NCBI GenBank assembly: GCA_900088475.1
Contig: FLMG01000600.1
Location: 3,388 to 67,387 of the forward strand
Source: Hyphochytrium catenoides
Taxonomy: Eukaryota; Protista; Hyphochytriomycota
Reading direction: 5' to 3'
Length of the DNA stretch: 64,000 bases
The notes beneath the pieces are model-generated. The model saw only the letters and a list, made by a program, of their open reading frames with translations, had not been told where the DNA came from and did not search any database. Below are positions 2,451 to 28,852 of the stretch, piece by piece; within the stretch, counting starts at the first letter, position 1, and the number at the start of each line of letters is the position of its first letter. Both the position numbers and the translations under genes were made by a program.

Positions 2451-5257
2451 CTAATGGGTGCACGTATGGTACAACAGTCCATAGAGTTCTTCCTGCCGCC
2501 TTCGCGCGCGGGCATAGATTTGTGTGAACGCATGGTCCGGCTCAACTCGTGTTGACTTATGATCCAATTCACCTGGCAAAAGAGAGCCCAAGTAAGCAGG
2601 AGAAGCTAGAGGAGGAGGAATGGTCGCAAATGGTCGTTCATACGTATCTGGAGCGCAGTCCTCCCAGGCACGCAAGTAGACTTCAGAGAGCCTGCTATAA
2701 GATAAGCTACCCCTTTCAGTGTCGACTCCTGAAACGGTTCTAATATCAATGGCCTTCCCAAGGCATCCGCTACTTATACTGGTCAGTGCTGGGTGGAAGC
2801 GACAACAAGACGCTGCTGCTAGCCGAAGATACCTATAATGTGCTGCCAGGCCTTTGAATTAAGTAGAGCTGCTCCGCTCCCTATAACCGTGAAAGAATCC
2901 GGAAGCACAGGTTCTGCTTGCATTCCCGTTAAAAGTATGCCACCTGAAATAATAGTACTACGAAAGGATCAAGCCTACCTAAGAGCGTTAGAATGGTTGC
3001 TAGTCGCAAAGCGACTGCCTCCATGGACGCACGCAGTATCTGCTCGGATGTTGTGTTCCTAAGGGAGGTTGGGCGGTGCTCATCAGTTATATATTTTGCT
3101 TTTTGACGAATCGTTGCAGACATTAGGAAAGTCATACTTTGTGATGCCTATAATGGCTGCTCGCGCGTGATCACGCCAGCCCGGAGCTCTTTCGCCTGTC
3201 ACAGAAAGGAGGATATTAACGGGACCTTCATCACTCCCTGCCGCAGCCCTTACCGCTGAGAAAAGGAAGAATAGTTAGTCCATGACTGTCTGGAGCTTCT
3301 GCTGCGCAGGAGCTATCTGCAATAAGCCTTCCATTAGCCAAAAACAAGGCTCGACTCGAGCATGCGAACCCATGGTCTGGGTACCCTCCGGGATCTCAGC
3401 TCCTAATGCCGAGTTGCACCACTCGTACACGCTTCCTCCGTCCGTAAGTGCGCCCCCAATAAGGAGGTGATCTTCATCAAGACGATAGCACCAGAGGCCC
3501 GCTGGCACTAGGCCACCGCGCTGTAACCAGAGGAAGTCAAGGCGTAGGGTTGAGAGCCTTGGACAGAGTACCAGCAGATAGAGTATCTTACAGCTTCAAA
3601 TGTAGCATCCGATATAACCACTCTCATGGCTGCACTGGTACCGATTGTCAACGCCACGCGGCTAAGCAGCATAGACAATCAGACGAACGGTAGAGAACCA
3701 ACAAAAAAGAAAAGAGGAGTTCAACCGAGCAAGATTGCCCCCGACTTTGTTTGTATACCTATCAACCGTGCATTTGGATCCAATATTTGCGGCGGCGCCA
3801 TCTCCTACTCCGAGGAAGAAGCTGCATAAGCGCAGGACTGGCCAGCGCTTAGAGTAATGATCTGAAAGCCCCTGAAGACAGCCATCAAAGTTCTGAGAAG
3901 TTTACAGAGGTACAGAGATATGTAAGAATTTGGTGGTTGGGCCGCGAAAGTGATAGCCATGGGTAAATGTAAAGTTGTTACTGACCGCAAGAGGTGGAAG
4001 CATATCAGCCTCTATGCCCAGAATCTCTAGCAGTTCCTTATGCCAACACTTTAGCCTGAAGTTGAGTAGCCCCGTCCATGAGGCTTCACAGTAGCTGACT
4101 GGCACCCGCCCAGCCTTATGTCCTACGGGGACAATGAAACAGCTAAGAGGGTTAGTTTTAGGGTTCAATGGTCCAGCACCAGGCAAGCATGATTTACCAA
4201 ACCGATATGCCCGACGACAGGAGCCAAGGGAAAGCAAACCCCACCTAGAAGAAGGGAGTGTGCGGCACAAGAGGATACCAAAAGAGATCAACTGCTTGTT
4301 TTACCTATCCAAAGGCCCATCAGATGTGAACTGAGAGTCTTCCAGTGCTTCACAGTGGCAAAGGTCTCTGGGTCCCGTTGTCTGAACGCTGCAAGCTGGA
4401 CTGACGCGTACGATTGATGGATTGGAACTCCAGTCTCTTGAACAATTGCCTCCAAGCGACCCAAACGCTCCAATATGTTGTAGAGAATATTCTTACTCTC
4501 CTTGTCGTGGCCTTCCTCCATGAATGATGAATCCCTGCTCGCATACTAAGCGAGAAGAGATAGGTTAGCCCCACCCTTTCAAAATGACAGCCAAAAGCAA
4601 GTCCCTCAGAAGGCTAGTTAATTTCGGGGCCGAAGAGAATACTCTGTGCTTACCGACCGTGAAGACTGGGGTGATTGGCCGGTCCTGGGGTTGGCGGCGG
4701 CCAGCCGACGATCAGAGTGTAAGTAAGTCGCAATGATAAACACTAGGGATACAGGGCGAGTCGGATGTTGCCTGACCTCCATATCTACACCAAAGAAGTT
4801 CATCACAAACGAGTCCAGTCCCATAGCAACGACTCTGTAACTCTCCAGCTTTACTTCCAGAGCTGCGAGACAGTGATCGATGCACTGCTCCACGGTTGTT
4901 TCGATCAAAGATAGATTTGCTTTACCTGTACCGCACCGGTGATAGAAAGAGAGCAATCAGCTGGTTTGTCCTTTGCCCTAAAGAGCTATGATTAAGTGTT
5001 TCTCGACTACGCATTGCGGCTCGGCATCAGCCTTGACGCCATTGTACTTCTACAGTAAACGTTTCCTTACCCTTATCGTCCAGAATGGTCCACTTCAGCT
5101 GCACCATGGTACCCTCCACTAAGGACACCTCTTCTTTGGAGTTGTCACATACCGCGACCCCATCATGGTGGGGGGGACCATGTTGTCTGTAGAGAGTATG
5201 CGCAGAACAGCGTACAGAGGAGGTGCCGATGTCTAGAGTGAGGATGACGTCCTTCAT
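2451..5257 (-). CDS. FGGY-family carbohydrate kinase, gluconokinase (GntK)-like; multi-exon
   Basis: Spliced translation gives the FGGY motifs in order: LDIGTSSVR (exon 1, donor after 5071), GLDSFVMNFFGVD, DRPITPVFT/YAS, TGVPIHQSY, SYCEASWTGLLN, GVGDGAAANIGS, TIGTSAAMR, GLWCYRLD..GGALTDGGS, GERAPGW, ILRASMEAVALRL, WQHIIADALGRPL and a C-terminal EPDHAFTQIYARARRRQEELY. Junctions are GT-AG. Confidence 0.88.
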
Positions 5258-6006
5258 CTGTCAGCCAGTTCCTAGAGCTGCAAGCCACCTCTACCGCTGT
5301 TAAAAACGGTACCAGCGTTGATGCAGGTACTGGTCCTGCACTCACGATGCTTGTTGGATCTTAAAGTGAAGAGTGTTACTAGAATAGAGTTCTGTTTCTG
5401 TCAGCTCCTAATTGTCTGGGAGGCTGCATTCCTTTGTCGCGTGGGTATCGAACTCCTTGCTCTTGTTGGGAAAGCGGCGCTGGCCCCAGCCTACATGTAA
5501 ATGGAGAAGATCTTTGTTTTTGGTCTTTGTCAACCCTCCCTCCCAAGATTGAGATTATTGGCTTGATTGTGGCGTCGTTTCAGGTTCAGGATGTAAAAGT
5601 ACTGCAAGGACTTGACATTGGGTACCTGTTACTTGTACTTGGTCTTTACGACTTGCCTTCGTACAGTTACTGGTACCGGCTTGTGTATGAAAAGGAACAC
5701 TTGGTCGTTTCGGTGTGCATATAAATTTAGGAGCTGGAGCGTGATGGGCGGTCTGATCCCACCCAAGAATGCGCCGCCCCCAAGGTGACTCTCCTGACTC
5801 TCCCGTCAGCTCCTTCCCGAGCTGACCCTATCATATTCCGCCATCGAGGGGTAGATCTATTTTTGCCTCTGCCTGCGTGAAGTATACAGTTCGGAGTCCC
5901 AGCAGGAAGGAAGGAAGAAGAGAGCGAGAGGAGGGAAATAACTGACAGGAACCGAACAGGAAGCCTCCGCGGCAAAGAGAAGAGAGACAGAGAGCAGAGA
6001 CAGAGT

Positions 6007-6057
6007 GAGAGAGAGAGAGAGAGAGGGAAAGAGAGAGAGAGAGAAAGAGAGAGAGAG
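6007..6057. repeat. (GA)n microsatellite within a purine-rich tract (~5900-6300)
   Basis: gagagagagagagagagagggaaagagagagagagagaaagagagagagag is directly visible. Confidence 0.9.
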
Positions 6058-6703
6058 CGCGAAGGGAGAGGAATGCACAGGTACAGGGATAGCAAGAGAG
6101 CTAGAGGGAAGAGAGCTAGAGAAAGGGAAGGAGAGGGAGAGAGATTGTGAAAAGATGGCTCGAACTTCTAGGGAGAATGTTGAGGGCGAGGCAATAAGGG
6201 AAGAGAAGGAGAAAGGAAAAGAGGAATGGACGACTGGATCTATCACCTGCGATAGGCTAAAGACAGGAGAGGCGGAGAGGGATGAAGAGAGAGTGCTTCG
6301 AGTTGGCCATGATTTAGAGACTTGTCTACTTTGTTTTTCTAGGGATCCCCCACCGTAGCCTATTCTAGCAGCGCGTTCAGTGTACTCTAGGATCCAAAGG
6401 GGAGAGGAAGGAGATGTCAAATAATGAACAAGCGGCTTCTGGCTTTAGCGTCTCTATTTTTGGGATGACAGCAGTGCGGACTGAGCTACAGGGACAGCAG
6501 CAGGAGGAGATGTCCTAAAGCTGCAAGCTTAGCCCAAGATCAAACCCGCAAGACGTCCGCCGTGCAGCTGGCATGAGAAGAGAACCAGATTGCTTCTTGA
6601 GAATTTCGTGGTGGCTGCGATCAGTTTGATTATTCGCCTTGCCTCACCGACCTTGGGCCGCCAACAACTAAGGACAAATAGCGAAAAGCGAGAAGAGGAA
6701 CCA

Positions 6704-8429
6704 ATGAAGAGCGCGACCTGGGATCTCTTCCGAGGCGGCGAGCCCGGGCGGAAGAGTCTTGAAGTCGATCGCGAGGACGAGGTCACAGGCCTCTGCTCCG
6801 TTATGGAAGAGCGTGATAGCACCTTCCTCTCTCACGAGGATGCTGTCTCATGGCTCTCAGGCCTTATCTCACCGTCCTCAGCGTCGCTGCCTCGGACGAG
6901 GGACAGCTTACCCCATTTTAGCTTCGAGTCCTTTAGTGGAGTGAGGAGTAGCCAGTACCCGTCACCTGGTAAATTGGGTGGAACCTTGGATGGGGCCGGA
7001 AAGGAATCAGAGAGCCGCGACCCCACCTGTCCTGAGCCAGCCCTATCGGTAATTGAGTTATCTTCTAGCGTGGAACCTGTGAGTCGTCCCATCTGCCCTC
7101 TTCCGAGCCCGGAGCTTCGGCGACGGGAGTTATCAGTCCGTACGCAGCGCGGGTTGCCGCTCCTTCGCGCAATCACCTGCCCAGCACCACCCGCCGCCGG
7201 CCGAAATGAAAGTTGTGGGCTTGAGCCGACGCTTCCGTTCATCGACTCCCCGCTATTTTCTGTGTACAAAGGGGGTCTTTTGTTTCCCTCACTTCAACTT
7301 CCTTCTGACTCTTCGGATCTCAGCTTGAAGCCACGAGTTCAGGAACACCTGCAAAACCTTCCCACAGACAACCTCATGGAATCTCCTCCGCCGACGGGGT
7401 TACGGGAGCTATCGGGAGGTCACAAGCCCTGCAGCATCACAGGTTGCCCAAAGCGGGTCAGGTCGCGAGGACTCTGCAAGGCCCACGGTGGTGGGCGACG
7501 CTGCGTCATTGACGGCTGTCAGCGGTCAAGTCAGGGAGGGTCGCTATGCATCTCCCATGGGGGTGGGAAGAGGTGCGTTGAGCTTGCTTGTATATCCTAT
7601 CCGTGCAACAGTTTACTTATCCACTCTCGCCGGCCATTTCTAAGTCTCTCTTTCCTCTTACCTCGTGGTGCCCTGTAGATGCAAAGTAGAAGATTGTGGG
7701 AAAGCTGCCCAATCAAGAGGTGAGTCCTGCTTCTTTCTCTCACACTTTATTCGACACTGATCTCACGTACCCATGACAGGAATGTGCAAGGGACATGGAG
7801 GTGGCGTTCGCTGCAAGGTGGAGGGGTGCACGAAAAGCAGCCAAGGTAAGGCTGGAACGCCCACCGACGAACTAAACGGAGCTGATATCGAAACGAAAGC
7901 GGGGCAACTGAGTGTTTTCATGCCTCAGGCTCTGGATTCTGTCGGGCCCACGGAGGTGGCAAGAAGTGCAAGGTGGAGAACTGTGTAAAAGGTGCGCAGC
8001 GTGGCGGTTTCTGTGCTGGCCATGGAGGCAGTCGCTATTGCCAGATTCCTGGGTGCTCTAAGAATGATCGCGGGTGGGTAAAGCGCCTTTTGTTATCAAT
8101 GGTCGGCCAAACCATCGTTGCGCTCAATCACACCGGTTCTGTCCGTTATTTTGGCGTTGGTTTGGCGTTGGGCCGTCATCGTCTTTGAGCCCTAACCTTC
8201 GAACTCGTCTTTTGTCTTCAGTGGTGGTTTCTGCACAATGCATGGTGGCGGCAAGAAGTGCAAGGGGGAGGGCTGCGTGAAGCCCTCTCGAACAAAGGGC
8301 TTTTGTATCATGCATTTCAACCAGTACAAGCTTGCCATGGCTTCCAACCCCTCCGAGCAGACTGGGGCCTCCTCGTCAACATTGAAGCCCGGGAGTTCGT
8401 CGACACAGACACAAGCTGTGACAGCATGA
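6704..8429 (+). CDS. WRKY19-like zinc-finger repeat protein (7 x C-x4-C...C-x2-H-GGG), putative DNA-binding regulator; ~5 exons
   Basis: Approximate exons 6704-7572, 7679-7718, 7780-7845, 7929-8073 and 8222-8429 splice to CSITGCPKRVRSRGLCKAHGGG, RCVIDGC..LCISHGGG, KRCKVEDC..MCKGHGGG, VRCKVEGC..FCRAHGGG, KKCKVENC..FCAGHGGS, RYCQIPGC..FCTMHGGG and KKCKGEGC..FCIMHF, after a Ser/Pro-rich N-terminus. The start codon is uncertain. Confidence 0.85.
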
Positions 8430-8659
8430 GTTGCGCCCGCTTCTTTTCTCCTCCTCGTTTTGGATATTTATTTTTCTAACCCACTTTTGCCGCAGGAGCA
8501 CTGCTCCACCAAGTGTGCCTTCACTTTATAGTATGAGCTTTGGCCTATTGATTGACTATGAAGATAGTTCTCAGTGTCCATGAGCTACTTAATAAACCTG
8601 GACTATGATTTTAAAAGAGGCCCTTCGCGTGAGCATGCGGAAGTAGAGTGGAAACGAAC

Positions 8660-8830
8660 CTCACTATGACTGAACTGCGGTGCGTTGTTGGTCCTGGACA
8701 ACCTCGAGCTGGCAACCTCGAGCTGGCCACTGTGAAACGCTCTTCGGTGGCTACGTCTACCGGTTTCCTGTCGCTCGACGCTATGGAATTGTGGTCATGG
8801 CCACCAGAGATCAAGCCATCACTCTGACGG
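8660..8830 (+). mobile_element. Possible decayed pogo/Tc5-type DDE transposase fragment
   Basis: GALLVLDNL, then in a shifted frame AGHC...ARRYGIVVM, interrupted by a 14-bp tandem duplication (caacctcgagctgg, 8699-8726). Resembles LLxLDNxxxH...AxxxxIxL. Confidence 0.25.
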
Positions 8831-9368
8831 CGGAAAGCTTGCTGAGAATAGTCCCACAAGGACGAGGGGGGGAGATGGTTCATTTAAGGGTAGCCCCAGG
8901 ATGGAGGAAAGAAGACGTCGAGTCTGAGAGGGCTGAGAGTGCAAAGAGCTGGCCGTGCATAATCCTCATCAGTCCGCGCCTCTGCTCTTCTTGACCTGTG
9001 GCGACGATGAAGCATCTCCTCCGCCCAGACCACTTCTGGAGGCCTCCTCCCTCTTCCCCTTGCTCCTTCTCGCTGATCAACTTCCTCGCGGAGCTGCTAA
9101 CGCCTCGTTTACACAAAGAAGGTACTCCGGAGTATCTCTTAGCAACTTCTGCGATAATAACCAAAACTAACAGCAGTGTACAACGACAACTTCAACATGG
9201 CCCTCTCAAGCCCGCTGTCGCTATAATTGACAGCGTGAAGTCAAGAACGAAGCAGGAGCGGTTGTTGCAGATGTGCCACCAGCCTTGTTGGCGCTTGACT
9301 CTTGCACTTCTTCTCGCCGCTGTTGCATCTCACCTCATTCCTCCCGTCCCAGGAGCCTTATTATAGCC

Positions 9369-11887
9369 ATGACGATGCTTCTGGAAGTGGGTGGTCCGAC
9401 GTCCGAGCTTGCCGACTCGGACTTGAAGCGACTGCTGATACAAGCGTTGGAGAAGCTTGGAGATCGCCAAAGGGTGATGATCGTGCCCCCAGATTTCACC
9501 AGATTCCATTCGTAGGTTGATATCTCGTGATGCACAGTCCTCCATACCCCTTAAGTTGTCCTTTCAGGAAAGCTGGGGAGCTGACCAAGTTTGCCTATGA
9601 GTTTTATGGGGATGCTGTGAAAGACATCATGCCAGCGCTTGGAACGCATAAAGCTATGAGTGAAGGGCAACTGTCAAAGGTGAGAGTGCATTTTTTACCT
9701 TCGAACCTCAGCACTTGACCTCTACGACCCTGTTAAAGATGTTCCAGGGCATCCCGCACTCCCTTTTCAGGATCCATGACTGGCGGTAAGAGTGACCGTG
9801 TTAGAGCTTTCGAACTATCTGATTCTGTGACCTTTTCACCATGTCTTCTTAACCTTCTCCGGTCAGGAACGATGTGGTGACAATCGGGCATGTACCCGTC
9901 GAGATGGTAGAGCGCGCCAGCGATGGGAAGGTTAAAGAGTCCTGGCCGGCACAAGTGAACAAATTGGTAGGCTAGGTCAGGGAACTCTTCGGGTTACTCT
10001 CCCATTCTGACATGCGGTTCGGCAAAATCGCAGCTGTGGAACGGTGGGCACGACCTCATTCTCTCCATTGGCCAGGTACTCAGGGCTATCACTGAATCGG
10101 GAGAGAAGCTATCGGTTCATTCATTTCCCATCATCCTCAGGTTGTTCCACATGAGGTGATGGGCATGGCGAACTACAATAAGAACATCTTCGTTGGCATC
10201 GGTGCGGATGACCTTTCTTCCTTCCTCTTCTGACATCCTCACCATCATTCCCATCGATTGACCTCAGCTCACCTTCCTTGAACCTCTCTCTCGATCTCTT
10301 TCTCTTCTCTAATAATATCCCTTCACGGACAGGTGGGAGTGAGGCTATTAATTTCTCCCACTTCATTGGCGCTGTATATGGCATGGAGAGGATGATGGGT
10401 AGGACATGCTGCTGGTGATGGCTCCTGTGTCCCTCAAATAACACTTCCAGGCACCTGCAGGCAGGTCCAACAACCCCCTCCGCCAGATATTGAACTATGC
10501 CTCTGACCATTTCCTGGCGGAGAAGCCCGTTGTGTATCTGCAAACAGTCATAGCACGCAGGTAGTAAGAGATCATCGTCCCACTGTACTTCACCACAATG
10601 ACAGATCTGAATCTTAGGGCCGACGGCAAGCTTGTTACCCGCGGTCTTTTCGTTGGCGACGACAGTGAATGCTTTGAAAAAGCAGCCGCTTTGTCTCTCC
10701 AAGTCAATTTCACTATGTTAGAGGCGCCATTAAGGAAGGTTGTCACGGCCGCGGGCCTCCTATTCTTCGCTGGTAGCCCTGGTTCCTTTGACACCGACTT
10801 GTTGTAGGTAGTGGTCTATCTGGATCCGGAAGAATTCCATTCGACATGGCTGGGTAACAAGAGCATCTACCGTACTAGAATGGCCATCGAAGATGACGGA
10901 GAGCTCGTTGTCCTGGCTCCAGGGGTTCAGATGTTTGGCGAGGTAAAATGATGCACCCATCAACAATCTGCCCGTCCATTTAGCGCTTTCTCCTGTATAT
11001 GTTTAGGATGACCAGATAGATGCCTTAATCCGAAAGTATGGTTACCGATCAACGCCGGTAAGTAAGCGTGCAGTGCATGCGTAAATTGGCCACCCAAAAA
11101 CAATCTCAAGAGCACTTATTTCAAGTGTCTGCTGTTTGAATATACTCCTCTGTGCGTCGCATCATCTACTTTGGCCTTCTTCCATGATCTGAACGAATGG
11201 CATTCCTTGCGCTCGGGTTGGTCCTCATCCCTCTCTTGCGCAACCTGTTCTGTGTTTTTAGGAAGTTTTAGAGTTCCTCCGACAGAACCGTGATCTGAGC
11301 AAAAATCTTAGCGCCGCTGCACACCTTATCCATGGCTCTTCCGAAGGTCGGTTTCGCATTACCTACTGTCCAGGCCACCTTTCAAGAGACGAGATAGAAA
11401 GTGTTGGCTATGTCTACGCACCGCTTACCGAGATGTTTAAAAAATACAATCCTGAGGTATGTGACACGTCTTCTAAATGTTAGGAGCGACATCAGGACCA
11501 ACAATTAATCCAATTGCAGACTTTAAATGATGGTTTGAACATTGTGGAAGGCGAGGAGGTATTCTTCATCTCCAACCCGGCTATTGGCCTGTGGGCTTTC
11601 CGTGGCCGTTTCAACGACAGGTGAGACATAAATCTCATTTCATAGCAGGCTAGACCGATGCAAATAGCTCACACGGAGTCTTGTTTAGTGATAAGCCCAA
11701 TCCGAGCCAAACGGCCGCAGCCTCAGCTGAGGCAGAGTTCTCTTCACCCAACAATCGAACAAACTTCAAGCGCAACTCAGTGGCACAAGAAAACCTTGAC
11801 CGTGGCGTCGGAGGAGGGCCTTTCAGACTCATGGATGAGGAAGCAGAGCCTCGGTCATCAAAGCGCAAGAAAGCTGATAAGAAGTAA
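9369..11887 (+). CDS. LarA/DUF2088-family nickel-pincer-dependent hydroxyacid racemase/epimerase (resembles the D-mannonate/D-gluconate 2-epimerase type); 13-14 exons
   Basis: Spliced protein contains PPDFTRFHS, PALGTH, RIHDWR, IGQVVPHEVMGMANYNKNIFVGIGG, INFSHFIGAVYGMERMMG, STWLGNKSIYRTRMAI, LAPGV and AAHLIHGSSEGRF. The core ends at ~11620. It stops at 11624 if unspliced, or a 47-nt intron (11621-11667) adds a tail ending KRKKADKK at 11887. Confidence 0.88.
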
Positions 11888-12125: not shown

Positions 12126-15100
12126 TTATGTTGCCTTCTTCTGATAATTGACCAGGCAGACCTTTGCTGGAGCTCCAGCACTAGCTAGTGTCCTTAGCCA
12201 ATGGATCTGCCTCCAGGAAAGCCGGTCATTCTGTCCCTTGACCTCCACGAACATAGCCTCCCACTGCAAGGAGGTCACAAGTTCTTCGCACACTCTTACT
12301 TCTAGCTCCACCTTTTTGTGCTGCGATTCCCCTTCATTCCCGACTAAGGGCTTGAGCGTTCTCTCTGCGCAATGTTCCGCGTCCTGAGAGAAGAAAACAG
12401 GCAGAGCGGCCGTTGGGATGCCCTCACAACAGTCGAATTGAATGACTGAAACCCCTTCTTCAAGTGGTGCGCCGTTCTTTACTCGCATCATCAAGAGGTC
12501 AGGCAAACCGGCCGACAAAGTCACGTAGTCCATGGCCATCTCTTTCAGTAGTCGAGCGAGAACTTCACCTCCTAGGCATGCAGCCACACACAGCATCTCC
12601 CGAGGATCTATGCTCTCCCAACCTAGACCGAGGCACCGTTCGCCAAAGTGGCTCCTCATGACACATAATGTCTGTTGCATGAGGGCATAGGGAGACATTC
12701 TAGACAGAAGCTGCACCTTCTCGTCAATGACTCGCCGCCGCTTAAGATAGAATGACATACCGTCGTAGATGTCGAGAGGTGTGTTCTGGAAGGGCGTTTG
12801 AAAAACGTCAGGGACCTCACTAAAAATCTCATCCCAGAGCAGCAACCAAAAGAGATGTCGAAGGTGCCTGCCCTCGCAGTGCAGACCGTACCAGCTCCCC
12901 TCCTTATGGAAGTGCTGGATGACAAGCTTTTCCACTGTGCAGTTTACTGAGTTGTCAAAGCCAGCATAGAGATTTTTTTGTCCCACCTTGGCAGAGATGG
13001 GACGACCTTCAATGCTGATAACTTCCACTCCTAGCCCTGCATGAACCTCAAAACCGTTTTCTGCGGACTCTACAAGACTTGAAGTGCTTCTTCGCGGGAG
13101 AGAGGTGGGAGATATATCGCAATACAGCCCATTACCTTCCCCTTTGTACTCCGGCAAGCTCTGGGAGGAGCTATCAAACGCTTCAAGGTCCCGCGGTCTG
13201 CTCGAGCTCAGGAGCTTCCATATGAATTTGCCTAGAGGGGTCAGCTCTGGATTGGTCTCATTATTCTTTTTGTGAAGACGCTGGTACCGACACCAGAGCT
13301 CGGCTCGGGAGCACTGCGGAAGGGAGAGGTCCTGGATTGCAAGGAGACAGATATCCCTGCTCTCGGCTGACAGCTTCAGGTGTTGAAGATTCACGGAGAG
13401 GCGAATATAGTGGTCGCCTCGAGCCTCTCCAGAATGGTATGGTCCCATCAGTAGAGAAACTATTAAGCATACCGCTTGCACGTACTCCCGCTTGCGCTCT
13501 AGGTAAGGTAGAGCATCTTTGAGGACCGCAGCAATCTGGTAAGCCGCGCTGAAGCGATCAAAGAAGCTACTGACACCAGGTGAAGAAACGTTTTCTGAGC
13601 TGCCCATTTGGATGGCTAGATCGCGCAGCTCTCTAGGGCGAGCACTTGAAGCTTCAAAGAAAGTATACAGATGGTAAAGACGCGATGCTTCTTGAACAGC
13701 GCCAAGGAGGTCATCTTCGTCCACTGCCTCCCCGTCGTTCGGCAACGCAGGCAGGCTGCCAAACCCCTTGACGACATCACTGAATTCCCATATCTGGAGT
13801 CCGTCCTGTAACGATTTATGAATCAGAGCCGCCATTAGCTGTAGTGTTGGGTGCAGGGAACGCTTCGCCGGCGTGGGTGTATGCCATTCATCTATCAGAG
13901 ACATGATCTCTGTAGCAGGGTCCGCTGTTGCCTCAGTGCAACTATTTTCTCTTTTACACGCTCTCGTCGTCGTGTTCTTCGTCGCCAAGATGATCCTCTC
14001 TTCCACAGCAGCCGAAAACTGGCTCCTGAGTTCAATGGCCAGCTCGTAGCAGACGAAATGAACTCGGGAAGGGAAAATAGCGGTCGACTGTTGGCAAGTG
14101 TACTGCGGATACCTTTTGTACGAAGAAGTTAACCGGTGGTCGAGAATCCACTGAGTTAAAAGTGTACGTACCTAAGCTTGCCAAAGGCGCTGAGGAGTCC
14201 GGGCCAAAAGGGAGCGCCACCGTGGGAATGAGCACAATAAAGAAGAGATGTAGCCTCCACCTGACCATCACCTATCTTGGAGGCTCCTGAGGCCTCTCCT
14301 GCAGTTGCTGTGGGACTTTGACTCATCAAGAGATTGGAGGAGGACAAATAAAATAGTCTGAATATTCGCTTGAACAGTAAAGCAGGGCCATCCGTCAGCC
14401 GCACCATCAGTAGCTGATCTTCCACATCAAACTCTTCCTTTTGGGATGACGCCTTCCGCAACATTGTTTTGATGCGGAAGGCCAGTGGCAGGCATCTGCC
14501 ATTAATCTGCCGCTGCTGAAGGCACAGGGTCTTCAGTGTTTCTAGGCAATCACCCTTTGTATTCACACTTGACTTTGAGCTGCTGGTCCTTGGTCTGAAG
14601 TGGCCAAGCAAAGTCTGCAGTTCCTTATGCTGCAGCTGCTCAAGCACCTCAAAGAGATCTGAGAAAGAGGCTTTAGAATATGGAGGGCCAGCGGGCTCAT
14701 TTAACCCCCGCAAAAATCCACCGTCGACCAAAATCTGCAATACTTTCGCCAAGTCGCCAAGGCTGCAGGTATCCTGCAAATAACTTCCTCAGAGAGCAGC
14801 GGCGCGCATAAGGTTAGCCAACACTGTGTAGTCATCTCTAAAGGCAGAGGATCTCACTTTCTTAGCTCAAGGCTTCGGAACCATGGGCCCTTCCGCTGAA
14901 GTAAGCGGGCATATACAGACCTGACGTCCTCCAAGTACGACAGGAGACGCTGAACGTTGTCCTGCTCTTCTGAGGTGAACAGCAATCTATAGTCATCTCT
15001 GAACAAAACTCGCTCCAGCACTAGAGTCAAATGTTTCGCATAAGCGCAGGTTCTTTTACTCCCTGCCTGCTCTTCCCGGAATGAACGGAATGGTAATTGT

Positions 15101-15513
15101 CCGTCGCCAGGCAAGGGCTCCTCAGCTCCTGAGTCTTCCGAGCTGCATAAGTCTATGGTGTCTCCTGAATGGTGAAGTCGACATGACTCCTGTCCTCCGG
15201 GTTCACTCTGTCGCAAATCGGATTGCCCCCGGTCCCTTCGCTCCTGCGGTCCCTTTTTTGAAGGGTGAAGATGCTTCGTCAAAGCCGACTCATGTGTCTG
15301 CAACCGCCGCTTGAGCTTCAGCTTTGAGGACCTAGTGGGGACTGACGGGTTCACAATCACATCTGCCTGCCATGGACTAGTGATCAGACAAACCACTGTT
15401 GATTCTTTTGGTTTCGCCTGATCCGCAGTACTCTCGCTCATCTGTATAGAGATGATAATTGGGATAGTACCTGGGGCATTTGTCTGCGGCACATCCCTGG
15501 CTGTCTGCGGCAC
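12126..15513 (-). CDS. FAN1: Fanconi-associated nuclease 1 (VRR-NUC domain); at least 3 exons, start uncertain
   Basis: Motifs YARLLQRKGPWFR, spliced LRYPQYTC..IFPSR..YE, RGDHYIRLSVNLQHL, TVEKLVIQHF..WYGLHCEG..LFWLLLWDEIF..VPDVFQTPFQNTPLD, GLPDLLM and VEVKGQNDRLSWRQIHWL (PD-(D/E)xK VRR-NUC active site). Confidence 0.93.
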
Positions 15514-23429: not shown

Positions 23430-25126
23430 TTGGAACGTCTCCCTTGCAATTTACCTTTGCTTTTTCCTTCTTTGTTTCGAGAGCCGTTCGTTCTAGAAGA
23501 GACATCTGGGACGCTGCATGTGCTGCATACTTCGATCTGTTTGCCTCAATGGTGGACAGCCAATTATCTCTCTCTTGTTTGTATCTCCGCCTTCTCTAAG
23601 GATGCAAGGGCTTCATTAGGATCTAATTTTATGCAGTGAATGCGAAAGGGTACCTCTTCTATTGACAGTGCAGAGGGAAGTCTTGCGGGGTGCGATGCAA
23701 GGACTTTCTTCATGAACTCATTTGCTCTACGCAGTCTTTCAAGTCTCTCTTCTTCTTTCCTTTTCTCTTCCAGAGCTTTCTGCTGGACAAGTTCCGTTCT
23801 ATCTTCAACTGCCTTCTTCCGCAGTTTTGATGATCTGGTGGATTTGAAAGTGGGAATGCAAGAAGAATTCCGAAGATGGATTGCTGATTCATCTTCGATT
23901 CTCTCACTGGGCTCGACCTTCTTGTCAGCTCTTTTATTGTTCGCGGCCACTTCCCCAACCGTGCGGGGAGTGGCTTTTTGTGGTCGGAGGTTGGAATACA
24001 ACTTAAACTCGGCCACTTCTGTCACGGTTCTCGCCTGGCGCGCAGCGTTGAGCTTGTCCTCAAACTTCTTTTGTTGGTCCCTCATAAACTCCTCATATCT
24101 CCCAATCTCAACGGCCTGCCTCTTTGATGGGGCAGACTTTGGCCGTATAGGGCTCTCCCCTTTACCTCGCGCCTGAGCTGCAGAATCAGAGGAGTGAGAA
24201 GAGGAGCTCTTCTGCTTGTTGTTAGTATCGCTCCCAGCTTTTGCCATTCTGGGGAACAAGCGCGACTCCGCAAGTAGTTTAGCGCTGCGAGCCGCTATGC
24301 GCTCCTGCCTCTTCTTCGCGTTCACCTCTTCTTCTCGTGCCCTGCTCTGGCGTGTAGTTTGTGGGACATCTCTGGCGTGAGGCTTCTTGGCTAGAATAGC
24401 TCTTTCTCTCTCTTCCACTACTTTGTCAATATCCTTCTTCCTTTCTTCGGCGGTCTGCTCCTCATGTTTAAGAAACTCTTGGGAGGGTCCACGACCGTTA
24501 TATATGGCTCTTTTACGACGAAGCTCGCCTTTTATCGCCTCAAGCTCCACTTGACGCTGCTTTTTTTCTCTATCAATGGACAAACACCAGGATCACTTAA
24601 GGGATTCCTCTCTATGGCGTGTGGTTAAAGTGTCAGACTTTACTTACTCTTCAGCCCATTTGCGTCGTTGCATATCCTTAGCTAGCTCGAACAGTTCTTG
24701 GGAACGCGGGATCGGCAAAACGCGAGCGCGGCGATCAGGATCCGTCTCCTCACCGTCTGAGCTGTGCAATGATTCTTTTTCCGAATCACCTTCCTCACGT
24801 TTGTGTTGTTCTCTCTCGTCCTCCTCCTCCTCGCTGTTGCGTTCTCTCTCAAGGCTGCCTCTTCTCCGTCGTCTACGGCCAATGTCAGGGGATGCTGTCT
24901 TCCCTTCCTCGTCATGCTTCGTTCGCAATTCATCAACGACGGCCAGGAGCTCTTCTACCTTGCTCTCAAGATATGACACATACTGCTTTGATGGCGCTGA
25001 TTTACCCATTGGACTCTATGAAGCCAAAAAGGAATATCCTCCAGCAACTACGTACTCCTCTCCCTTTCTCTTCTGAAGCTTCTAAGGAAGAGCTTCAAGC
25101 TGACCATGCGAAGCTTTCTTCCCATG
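23430..25126 (-). CDS. Charged coiled-coil protein, possibly FAM161-like (centriole/cilium); boundaries approximate
   Basis: ORFs 24644-25009 and 23564-24583 are K/E/R-rich and joined by an intron. The segments QQKKFEDKLNAARQARTVTEVAEFKL, PTFKSTRSSKLRKKAVE and SLLER recall FAM161/UPF0564. The family call is tentative. Confidence 0.45.
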
Positions 25127-25641: not shown

Positions 25642-28600
25642 ATGACCTCCGACCCCACTAGCGACACTACGTCTGCGATGGAGAAAGTGCCACTTCCTCC
25701 TGGTGTGGGGGCGATGTTTATTAGCCAAAAAAATCTGGAGAAGTACGGGCTGCTCGAGGAGGATGGCAAGAGTGTCAAGCCCTTTAAACTCTTTCCGAAG
25801 AGCGAGATTATGGAAGAAATCCAGAAGATTGGCTTTTATTCTGATTTCTTTAACTTCAGAGATAGTCTCAAGGTCAGTGAGGTTGGTACTTAGAATGCCA
25901 AGATCCTCCTTCTGACGAACTCCGAGCAGACATATGATAGACCTGAGATCCTTGTTGCTAGTGATCCCGAGTCTGTTTATGGGGAGAACTTCATTTTGGC
26001 ACTGACTGGTGAGGCCTACGAGAATGAGACAAAGGTACAGAACAATAGTGTGAAGAGTTTCGAATTGTCTTCGACCACCCGTTAGCTAATGCTGTTCTGT
26101 ATAGAAATTGGAGATGAAAGCTAGGGAGAAGCAATTTGCGTTAGAGAAAAAAGCCGCTGAGGATAGACGACGAGAAGAGGAAGAACGAGCCATACTGACC
26201 GCCGTTTACGAAGACCGTCCAATTGTGGCAGGATCGTATCACTCTTTAACCCTGCACATCTCTGCCACCGAAGTTCAAGATCTCACTGTGAAGAACGAGA
26301 GGCCCCTGGTGAATCTCTATATGGACTACTCGCTTGATCTTCTCTTGACACATTACATGCGCCTCCAAGTAACCACCCTTCCATTCAACTTTCCATCTCG
26401 CATAGATACGAATAAACATCTCAAAGGCTGCTCACCGTCGAAATGGTCCATACAAGTTCTCCGACAAGGAAGCAGCGGACACGGCAGGTAAGCAGTCACG
26501 AGGTGTGAAAACCTGGTAATTCACAAAGGTTAATCAACTTGCTAGGATTATGCGAATGTCGCCCACACAAGGATCCAAATTTTGACCTATCGCGGGTGGT
26601 TTTGGACGCAGGGTTTCAAGCGAACGCCCTTAGTGTCAGCACTGAGACACAAACAAGCTGGTTTCGAAGTATAAATAACTCGTCGCAGGTACCGCTTTCA
26701 GAGGTGATTCTGTGGACGATGTAGCCGTTCTAAATGTCGTACTTCTTGTCCCGCATGCTACCTATAGTACACTGAGCTGGACTACGAAGCAAAGGAGAGA
26801 GAGCATTTGTTAGAGTCTCACGCCCTTGTGACCTTTTTGCGCCGAGTTCAGCCTAAGATGGAAGAAGCATTGCAACAGAATGAAACCCTTGACCCGTTTG
26901 TCGATGAGTTCTCATGGCTGGCAGAAGATGAGATTCCACTTGGAAACAAGAGCGAGAATATTGTGAAAGAACTCCGAACGTTCACAGATCTTGTGTATAG
27001 CAAAAATAAGAGCTTATCCTTCATCGATTGGCATCCGGTCAAGAAGGGTGTCTTGGCTGTCTCAGCAACTTCAAGCGGGACTTTGGAGCAACGGATTGAA
27101 CAATCGGGGAAGGTAAGAACGCAAGTAGTACCCCGGTCTTCAAATTCTTCCCACCGCTAATCAGACGTCTTGTCAATCTTTGTCAACTCCTGTTCGCCTT
27201 TGCTTAACTCATAGGCTGAGATGTCCTACGTTTTGGTTTGGAACTTTAGAGACCTGATCCATCCGCAGTTCGTGCTGGAGTCCCCTGGGGACGTGTATTG
27301 CGTCCAGTACAACCCTACTATGCCGCACCTTATTGCTGGTGGTAGCTCCACGGGTCAGGTAGTGTTATGGGACTTGTCTACAATGGAACAGAGCGCAACG
27401 GCTAAGCAAGCGAGTGGAGGTGCTTCAAGCCTTCCCGAAGAGAATGAGGAGGAAAAGACTCCGCCTCCGGTAAGAAGAAAAATAGCCACCTCTACAGGGA
27501 CTAGTATCAGTTCGATAATCTTTGGTAGCGTAGATATCTCCAGCAAGCGTCTCTTTCGTGGAGGGCAGCCACAGACGCCCGGTGGCGGATATTGCTTGGC
27601 TCCCAGCGGGAGTGGAGGTGAATAGCAACGGAAACATTCAGAAGTCAGAGGATGGTAGGGCCAGTCAATTCATAACTGTTGCCGGTGACGGTCAAGTTTG
27701 CATTTGGGACGTTCGATACAGAGAGCAATGCATCAAGAACCCTAGAATGTACAATAGGAAGGTGAGTCAGACTATATGTTAGTTGTGCCTCAATTATTTC
27801 TAAGGCCCGCTCGATTAATGTTGTGCAATCTCTTTCATTTGCAATGGTCCCAGCCCAACAAGGATGGTACACTCTCGGAGATTGTATGGATTCCGATCTT
27901 TCGGACGGTGTTGACAAAGATTGAAGGAGTTGGTGAATTTCTGCTCTCGGCGGTGGCTCTTTCCAGTCCTAGTCGAGACGAGGCGTTGAGCTTTAGCAGT
28001 CAGTTTTTTTGCGGTACAGAGGAAGGAGAGCTTGTCTACGCCGATTGGAAGGCGCAGCATTCTATTCCCTCTAATAAGAAGAGTTTAACGGGTGAAGAAA
28101 ATGGCTCAATTGAGAAGGTCCCCAGTGCTGACAAGACCGGTAACCCGGGGGACTCTTCGGGCCAGGACCATGTGCTCTGGTGTAGTCAGGATCATTTCCG
28201 CCCTTGCTTGGGGTTGCGCCGTTCACCTTTTCATGTACAGCTTATTGTCAGCGTGGGAGATTGGTCATTCAATTTGTGGAAAGAGGGTCTGCAGTTGCCT
28301 ATATTTAGCTCTCCGATATCTTCAACCTATCTAAGTTGCGCGGCATGGTCACCTACTAGGCCTTCGGTTCTTATGGTCGGTCGGATCGATGGCAACCTGG
28401 ACGTCTGGGATCTGGCTGACCAGTCTCACAAGCCTGCCCTAGTCGTGAACGTAGCTCCGTATCCGATCACTTCGCTGCAATTCTGGTGGCATCCGACGTC
28501 AGGAGCCAAACAACAGCTATTAGCGGTAGGAGATGCCAATGGTAACCTCCATATTCTGGACCTTCCAAGAAATCTCTGGCGCCCAATTCCCAACGAGCAG

Positions 28601-28852
28601 GATTTTATGGAAGCTTTTATCGCACGCGAAGTGGGTCGGGTAGAATATTTGAAGAGCCGTCAATCGGGAAAGACCGACCACGCGCCTCCCTTGGCTATAG
28701 ACAACAGAGAGCAAGTGGGTGGTCAAGAAAATAGTGGCACCACTCAGGAAGCTCTTCGTTTCAAGACTGATGAAGCATTAGAGGCTGAGTACCAAGAGTT
28801 GGAAGCACAGTTCCGACAGCAGTTCTCGGGAACGAATAAACAACAGCTATGA
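25642..28852 (+). CDS. DNAI3: Axonemal inner-arm dynein intermediate chain IC140/WDR63 (WD40); multi-exon
   Basis: N-terminal PFKLFPKSEIMEEIQKIGFYSDF, MEEALQQNETLDPF, ELRTFTDLVYSKNK..IDWHP, VLVWNFRDLIHPQFVLESP, IAGGSSTGQVVLWD, SHRRPVADIAWLP, FFCGTEEGELVYADW, SVGDWSFNLWKEG, WSPTRPSVL..DVWDLADQSHKP and LAVGDANGNLHILDLPRNL. Confidence 0.88.

Follow-up and report, generated by a model that had tools for sequence, protein, structure and literature searches.

A putative LarA-family D-mannonate/D-gluconate epimerase gene and a candidate partner kinase gene in the protist Hyphochytrium catenoides

A 64,000-nucleotide stretch of Hyphochytrium catenoides DNA (contig FLMG01000600.1, positions 3,388 to 67,387 of the forward strand), hereafter the window, is about 50% G+C and eukaryotic, with many short introns. 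It carries a gene of the LarA family close to a gene for an FGGY-family sugar-acid kinase. In the reading that we favor, and to which we assign a probability of roughly 0.6, these two genes and the zinc-finger gene lying between them are three separate, intact nuclear genes. The LarA homolog would be a D-mannonate/D-gluconate epimerase, the kinase would turn gluconate into 6-phosphogluconate, and together they would form the final two steps in the breakdown of hexuronates. The epimerase would interconvert D-mannonate and D-gluconate by means of a nickel-pincer nucleotide (NPN), and the 6-phosphogluconate made by the neighboring kinase would enter the pentose phosphate pathway. The two enzymes would thereby supply the end of the series leading from glucuronate through fructuronate, mannonate and gluconate to 6-phosphogluconate. 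A hexuronate route of this kind is known from Thermotoga and is implied by bacterial operons of the same LarA group. The analysis shows the gene structures, the family placement, the conserved residues, the bacterial gene context and a linkage that is not conserved in other genomes; the two substrates, the use of the cofactor and the joint pathway are inferred.

The LarA-family gene and its bacterial relatives

A preliminary description of this DNA had placed a kinase gene divergent from a zinc-finger gene, which is followed by a LarA-family gene, and this layout is borne out by exon-level family matches and alignments. Three intact, intron-rich genes fill the interval 2451-11887, with the orientations as described and the coordinates essentially so; the LarA coding region stops at 11624, and position 11887 belongs to a small open reading frame (ORF). 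The start codons of the kinase and LarA genes are 4.1 kb apart, with one gene between them. Family scans of the window genes were run exon by exon or ORF by ORF.

The gene for the putative D-mannonate/D-gluconate 2-epimerase (LarA family, NPN_18, GntE branch) occupies 9369-11624 on the plus strand. It comprises 13 coding blocks and 12 introns, with likely GT/AG intron ends visible at most exon junctions. The blocks lie approximately at 9369-9512, 9569-9679, 9739-9786, 9865-9969, 10034-10078, 10141-10203, 10329-10403, 10460-10552, ~10600-10750, 10808-10942, 11007-11057, 11262-11456 and 11508-11621, followed by the stop codon at 11622-11624. All but one of the 13 blocks have colinear matches to the NCBIfam model NF052594 (NPN_18_hexonate, 'nickel-dependent putative hexonate epimerase'), from profile position 3 to position 410 of 411. 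The fifth block, of 16 residues, has no match to this model when scanned alone and aligns to the bacterial proteins. Summed over the unjoined exons, the scores come to about 477 bits, against a whole-protein cut-off of 500 and against 625 and 653 bits for two bacterial members. Among the NCBIfam matches of the LarA exons there was no competing LarA-family model, and tblastn with a bacterial member gave an alignment to the gene over residues 1-423. Pfam returned no LarA-family match for single exons at E values up to 10. Since even a full bacterial member scores only 30.7 bits on the Pfam family Lar_N, NCBIfam is the informative library in this case.

In an alignment with ten bacterial members, the exons span 422 of 423 positions and retain 134 of the 136 columns invariant in those members. 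Their identity to the bacterial proteins (59-66%) is in the same range as that of the bacterial proteins among themselves. The motifs PPDFTR, GTH, VVPHE, NYNKN, FSHF and GNKSIYRT are all intact, and we take them to represent the catalytic histidines, the cofactor lysine and the nickel histidine of LarA (His108, His174, Lys184 and His200 in the L. plantarum enzyme). When solved structures were searched with the group profile, the sole match was 4NAR from Thermotoga maritima (E 2.1e-47), presumably the apoprotein of GntE2; the structure of L. plantarum LarA itself was not matched in this search. A scan of prokaryotic genomes with one LarA exon produced hundreds of relatives, with identity of up to 74%. 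For phylogenetic analysis of both the LarA homolog and the kinase, the exon rows of each alignment were merged into one row. In the LarA tree, which included 59 bacterial members, the window gene forms a long branch inside no supported bacterial group, and no bacterial donor emerged from this tree. A metagenome scan for eukaryotic orthologs or close relatives yielded nothing above 78% identity, the loci scanned being bacterial-looking, and the best 120 of more than 8000 LarA-family members in a word search with a mixed profile were likewise all bacterial-looking.

LarA homologs have been divided into 25 groups, of which group 18 was proposed to epimerize 'a hexonate' (PMC7583248, 2020). Bacterial members of this group are equal in length to the window gene and colinear with it; the window gene differs from them in its 12 introns and its long branch. 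All eukaryotic LarA homologs have been placed on the GntE branch, and one of them, LarAH15 of Phytophthora nicotianae, was assayed and found to be an active D-gluconate 2-epimerase, with a kcat/Km of ~1.2e4 on D-mannonate (PMC11770544, J Biol Chem 2024). An NPN-dependent gluconate epimerase is thus already known in eukaryotes, and the idea that the locus would represent a new NPN-dependent pathway for eukaryotes does not hold. The same study suggested that the oomycete epimerase could be targeted by fungicides and is silent on eukaryotic gene neighborhoods or a partner kinase (PMC11770544).

The family match and the conserved residues uphold the earlier assignment of the gene to the hexonate-epimerase type (NPN_18, GntE branch). 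By branch placement, the window homolog may be likened to LarAH15, another stramenopile LarA homolog of the GntE branch, with D-mannonate/D-gluconate conversion via the nickel-pincer cofactor as the expected shared chemistry. Judged from its sequence, the protein is most likely an NPN-dependent D-mannonate/D-gluconate 2-epimerase of LarA group 18 on the GntE branch. The locus would plausibly represent an additional eukaryotic GntE-type epimerase, an enzyme of a known kind, beside a plausible partner kinase. One bacterial group 18 member (P0225) is labeled 'Novel D-mannonate dehydrogenase' by one source; this is likely a misannotation, though it again ties the LarA family to mannonate.

The gene context of the bacterial relatives points to the same substrates. 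ORFs were predicted in 160 retrieved loci of bacterial or metagenomic origin, and in 127 of these the LarA ORF served as the anchor. Within four genes of LarA, a short-chain dehydrogenase/reductase (SDR) was present in 64 of the 127 loci (directly adjacent in 40), 6-phosphogluconate dehydrogenase in 49 (22) and glucuronate isomerase in 29 (2). A PfkB-type kinase was found in 23 loci (directly adjacent in 11), a UxaE-like epimerase in 19 (6) and an MFS transporter in 19 (7). The one SDR that was scanned matches the D-mannonate oxidoreductase model NF006132 with 369 bits (cut-off 281). Published frequencies for group 18 are 36% for SDR and 32% for 6-phosphogluconate dehydrogenase (Table S1 of PMC7583248). 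If mannonate is converted by way of gluconate into 6-phosphogluconate, a mannonate-forming reductase upstream and a consumer of 6-phosphogluconate downstream are to be expected. Such a route, as the preliminary description had proposed, is implied by these neighborhoods together with Table S1. In contrast to the bacterial genes, which adjoin D-mannonate oxidoreductase, 6-phosphogluconate dehydrogenase, glucuronate isomerase and mostly PfkB-type kinases, the LarA gene of H. catenoides has none of these in the window. No other pathway gene turned up when the full set of 856 proteins encoded in the bacterial loci was compared with the window by tblastn.

A parallel for the combination of enzymes is the GntE2 system of T. 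maritima, for which the same chemistry, from mannonate to gluconate and on to 6-phosphogluconate, has been proposed. An FGGY-type kinase (COG1070) adjoins the LarA gene in 86% of the loci of this Thermotoga group, group 20 (Table S1 of PMC7583248); the likeness of the kinases is one at the family level. The two systems differ in that GntE2 belongs to LarA group 20 and the window gene to group 18, and in that a bacterial operon stands against separate spliced genes.

The neighboring FGGY kinase

The FGGY-family kinase gene lies at 2451-5257 on the minus strand, with the ATG start at 5257 and the stop codon at 2451-2453. Its 13 coding blocks are located approximately at 5257-5180, 4929-4750, 4545-4300, 4105-3971, 3877-3767, 3675-3607, 3508-3395, 3305-3252, 3196-3137, 3060-2971, 2908-2834, 2773-2684 and 2552-2454. 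Single exons give weak matches to Pfam FGGY_N (17-24 bits) and to gntK_FGGY (11-19 bits). The longest exon (4291-4545 on the minus strand) was the query with which relatives of the kinase were sought in a representative protein library. The 14 proteins retrieved in this way and further relatives are full-length FGGY kinases with FGGY_N and FGGY_C domains. The window exons tile the whole alignment of 12 such full-length relatives, retain all 44 invariant columns and share 40-46% identity with each relative. Three homologs (P0003, P0005 and P0013) come from short, transcript-like contigs of 1.8-3 kb without gene context, and two bacterial relatives (L089 and L091) have no informative neighbor genes.

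Comparison of the relatives with solved structures ranks a gluconate kinase, 3GBT, first (1.7e-36), followed by glycerol kinases (1.8e-14) and a xylulokinase (1.9e-13). Several relatives are named gluconokinase by JGI, UniRef and NCBI. Of the seven full-length relatives scanned, five have gntK_FGGY (TIGR01314) as their top NCBIfam model and two have XylB, all far below the cut-offs. In the tree, the window kinase falls into a clade (SH-aLRT 97) with all named eukaryotic relatives, mostly stramenopiles, the bacterial relatives lying outside. These eukaryotes include oomycetes (Saprolegnia, Aphanomyces, Achlya, Pythium and Peronosclerospora), Nannochloropsis, Ectocarpus and diatoms. To our knowledge, no member of this eukaryotic clade has been assayed. 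The protein is best described as a member of a gluconokinase-like FGGY subfamily, its nearest named relatives being FGGY gluconokinases. With these (TIGR01314; 3GBT, deposited as 'Gluconate kinase') it shares the two-domain FGGY fold family, and it differs from them in belonging to a separate, mostly eukaryotic clade. The most likely reaction for such a kinase would be phosphorylation of gluconate to 6-phosphogluconate.

Substrates, linkage and the zinc-finger gene

Several results weigh against the reading in which the two enzymes work in succession on mannonate and gluconate. On the side of the epimerase, the bacterial enzymes of group 18 are unassayed and the published substrate is a hypothesis only, so the actual one could be another hexonate (PMC7583248). 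On the side of the kinase, the full-length relatives score 120-148 bits on gntK_FGGY, whose equivalog cut-off is 648.55, and XylB scores higher in two of the seven. With a score this far below the TIGR01314 cut-off, the kinase is not filed as a gntK_FGGY equivalog; gntK_FGGY is only the nearest named kind. An FGGY kinase stands directly beside this LarA type in only one of the 127 bacterial loci, and that locus (L022) comes from a Planctomycetota genome bin. Finally, the retrieved flanks of the kinase ortholog, at most 10 kb per side, contain no LarA gene in any of six eukaryotes: Peronosclerospora, Pythium, Saprolegnia, Nannochloropsis, Ectocarpus and Seminavis, a sample that includes no close relative of H. 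catenoides. The linkage is not conserved in this sample.

If the LarA homolog epimerized some other hexonate or a 2-hydroxy acid, the first step of the proposed pathway would be wrong. The cautious wording of the group 18 proposal, the word 'putative' in the NCBIfam name of the family and the case of GntE1 from group 19, whose Km for mannonate is so high that its authors suspect a different native substrate (PMC7583248), all speak for this view. Set against it are the many bacterial loci with D-mannonate oxidoreductase directly upstream and 6-phosphogluconate dehydrogenase downstream. Moreover, the Phytophthora enzyme, which sits on the same branch, does use D-mannonate. Weighing both sides, we regard a different substrate of the epimerase as quite improbable.

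The other element of the pair raises a similar question. The two genes might be neighbors by chance and their products unlinked, with the kinase acting on xylulose or on another pentulose, hexulose or sugar acid and the epimerase relying on another kinase or having another role. The kinase family lies some 500 bits under the gntK_FGGY cut-off, and XylB scores higher both in the relatives mentioned above and in the LarA-adjacent kinase of L022, which branches outside the family of the window kinase. In addition, the kinase found in bacterial group 18 loci is usually of the PfkB type, not FGGY, and the linkage is not conserved. Nevertheless, among solved structures a gluconate kinase leads the other relatives by an E-value margin of more than 20 orders of magnitude, and both bacterial and eukaryotic relatives are annotated as gluconokinase. 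The product of the epimerase also needs a kinase to reach the 6-phosphogluconate dehydrogenase encoded nearby in so many bacterial loci, and the Thermotoga group does pair its epimerase with an FGGY kinase. On balance, unrelated functions of the two enzymes appear unlikely, if still worth weighing. The earlier identification of an FGGY gluconokinase holds in part: the nearest characterized relatives are FGGY gluconokinases, but the gntK_FGGY cut-off is not reached and some relatives lean toward XylB. Separately, transfer of the two genes together in a bacterial operon was rejected, given the single FGGY pairing among the bacterial loci, the position of the L022 kinase outside the family and that of the window kinase in the eukaryotic clade.

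Should the epimerase and the kinase work as proposed, this protist would complete a route of bacterial type by which glucuronate and similar hexuronates reach the pentose phosphate pathway, with one of the steps depending on a rare nickel cofactor. It would provide a second, independent eukaryotic example beside the single assayed Phytophthora enzyme. The latter, in turn, would gain a candidate partner kinase, one common to oomycetes, diatoms, brown algae and eustigmatophytes, and knowing which kinase takes the product of the epimerase would sharpen the idea of a fungicide target. The adjacency of the genes itself adds little unless co-regulation is shown.

The two enzyme genes are separated by a gene for a Zf_WRKY19 repeat protein (~6704-8429, plus strand). 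Four ORF pieces of it match Pfam PF24906 (E = 3.8e-12, 7.4e-10, 1.8e-4 and 2.8e-5), the best match reaching 46.3 bits (cut-off 27). The repeats extend over at least four exons and are preceded by a stretch of some 270 residues that Pfam does not match. Within the 64 kb, C..HGGG..C motifs are restricted to 7475-8261, where there are five. The gene begins about 1.45 kb from the start of the divergently transcribed kinase gene, and the intergenic region between the two is at 5258-6703. It includes a long, low-complexity CT/GA-rich tract (~5727-6420) whose ORF translations are runs of SLSLSL and RERERE. The stretch of ~0.9 kb that separates the zinc-finger gene from LarA (8430-9368) presumably contains the LarA promoter and 5′ untranslated region.

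Had selection kept the kinase and the epimerase together as a co-regulated metabolic gene cluster, the zinc-finger protein might serve as its pathway-specific regulator. Two probable consecutive steps do lie within 9.5 kb, and the divergent kinase and zinc-finger genes could share a promoter region. By rough estimate, the chance that two given genes fall within two genes of each other is about four divided by the gene number, that is, of the order of 1e-4. By an equally rough estimate, with so many pairs of consecutive enzymes in a genome, it would be no surprise if one such pair were adjacent by chance. The possibility of chance adjacency had been raised in the preliminary description, and we likewise retain it, as the linkage is absent elsewhere and there are many enzyme pairs per genome. 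The six eukaryotic kinase loci without a LarA gene nearby speak against a selected cluster too, and the adjacency of kinase and LarA appears to be lineage-specific. A selected gene cluster is unproven and in our view clearly unlikely.

The part assigned to the zinc-finger protein fares no better. Nothing ties its gene to sugar-acid metabolism, and the region upstream of LarA (8430-9368) shares no word of at least 11 bases with the intergenic region of the kinase and zinc-finger genes; the proposal that it is a regulator finds no backing here. We also know of no evidence that the Zf_WRKY19 domain binds DNA. A Zf_WRKY19 repeat gene does occur just upstream of the kinase ortholog in Peronosclerospora sorghi (L085:7428-9285) and Pythium insidiosum (L173:72-1521), with one biotin/lipoyl-domain gene between the two in both species. 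This arrangement counts in favor of a regulator linked to the kinase, but the window gene resembles its oomycete counterparts in the repeats only, with no match over the first 270 residues, and orthology is thus unsupported. Moreover, Saprolegnia, Nannochloropsis, Ectocarpus and Seminavis have no zinc-finger gene in the vicinity of the kinase. The two oomycetes share their arrangement by descent; as a hint of a regulator, it is weak at most and is compatible with chance. It seems rather improbable that the three genes of the locus constitute a co-regulated module maintained by selection, with the Zf_WRKY19 protein as dedicated regulator and the oomycete zinc-finger gene as a remnant of an old neighborhood. 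The zinc-finger gene is probably a bystander between the two enzyme genes.

A further observation concerns the kinase locus of Seminavis robusta, in which an intronless SDR gene (L174:8781-9605) divergently adjoins the kinase ortholog. Its best NCBIfam match is glucose 1-dehydrogenase, with 160 bits (cut-off 215). A step from glucose to gluconate beside the kinase ortholog would fit gluconate as the kinase substrate.

As regards the assembly itself, contigs of two DNA samples cover positions 5000-10999 of the window, the part compared, with few differences. None of these contigs reaches from one gene into the next, and so the physical order of the genes rests on the assembly. Contigs from public runs (Logan) break at the CT/GA-rich tract. 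All three DNA runs have a 7-base insertion behind 8931 relative to the window, two of the three have a 1-base insertion behind 9363, and sample S2 (runs X2 and X3) shows many single-base differences over 5000-10999. The differences in S2 and the insertion behind 8931 suggest strain or allele variation, plus a small divergence from the assembly. At 10319 and at 10972, both within LarA introns, a contig in two DNA samples departs from the window and continues into 150-216 bases of unrelated sequence. These departures could reflect a second haplotype with other introns or a second gene copy.

Other features of the window

Beyond the LarA gene, and convergent with it, lies a FAN1-like nuclease gene (12126-15513, minus strand) with a VRR_NUC match of 61 bits and weak matches to FAN1_TPR and FAN1_HTH. 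Its best relatives in a large protein collection are at most 32% identical, which indicates how isolated the organism is. Farther along are an exon similar to FAM161A/B (23564-24583, minus strand; 32.8 bits against a cut-off of 29.9) and an exon with weak matches to WD40-type β-propellers (27776-28852, plus strand). At 29116-63976 on the minus strand are very long ORFs of 1788, 1083, 6588 and 2288 residues that look like one giant gene. The first two of these pieces have no Pfam match. Over 30-64 kb, GC skew is strongly negative (~-0.17).

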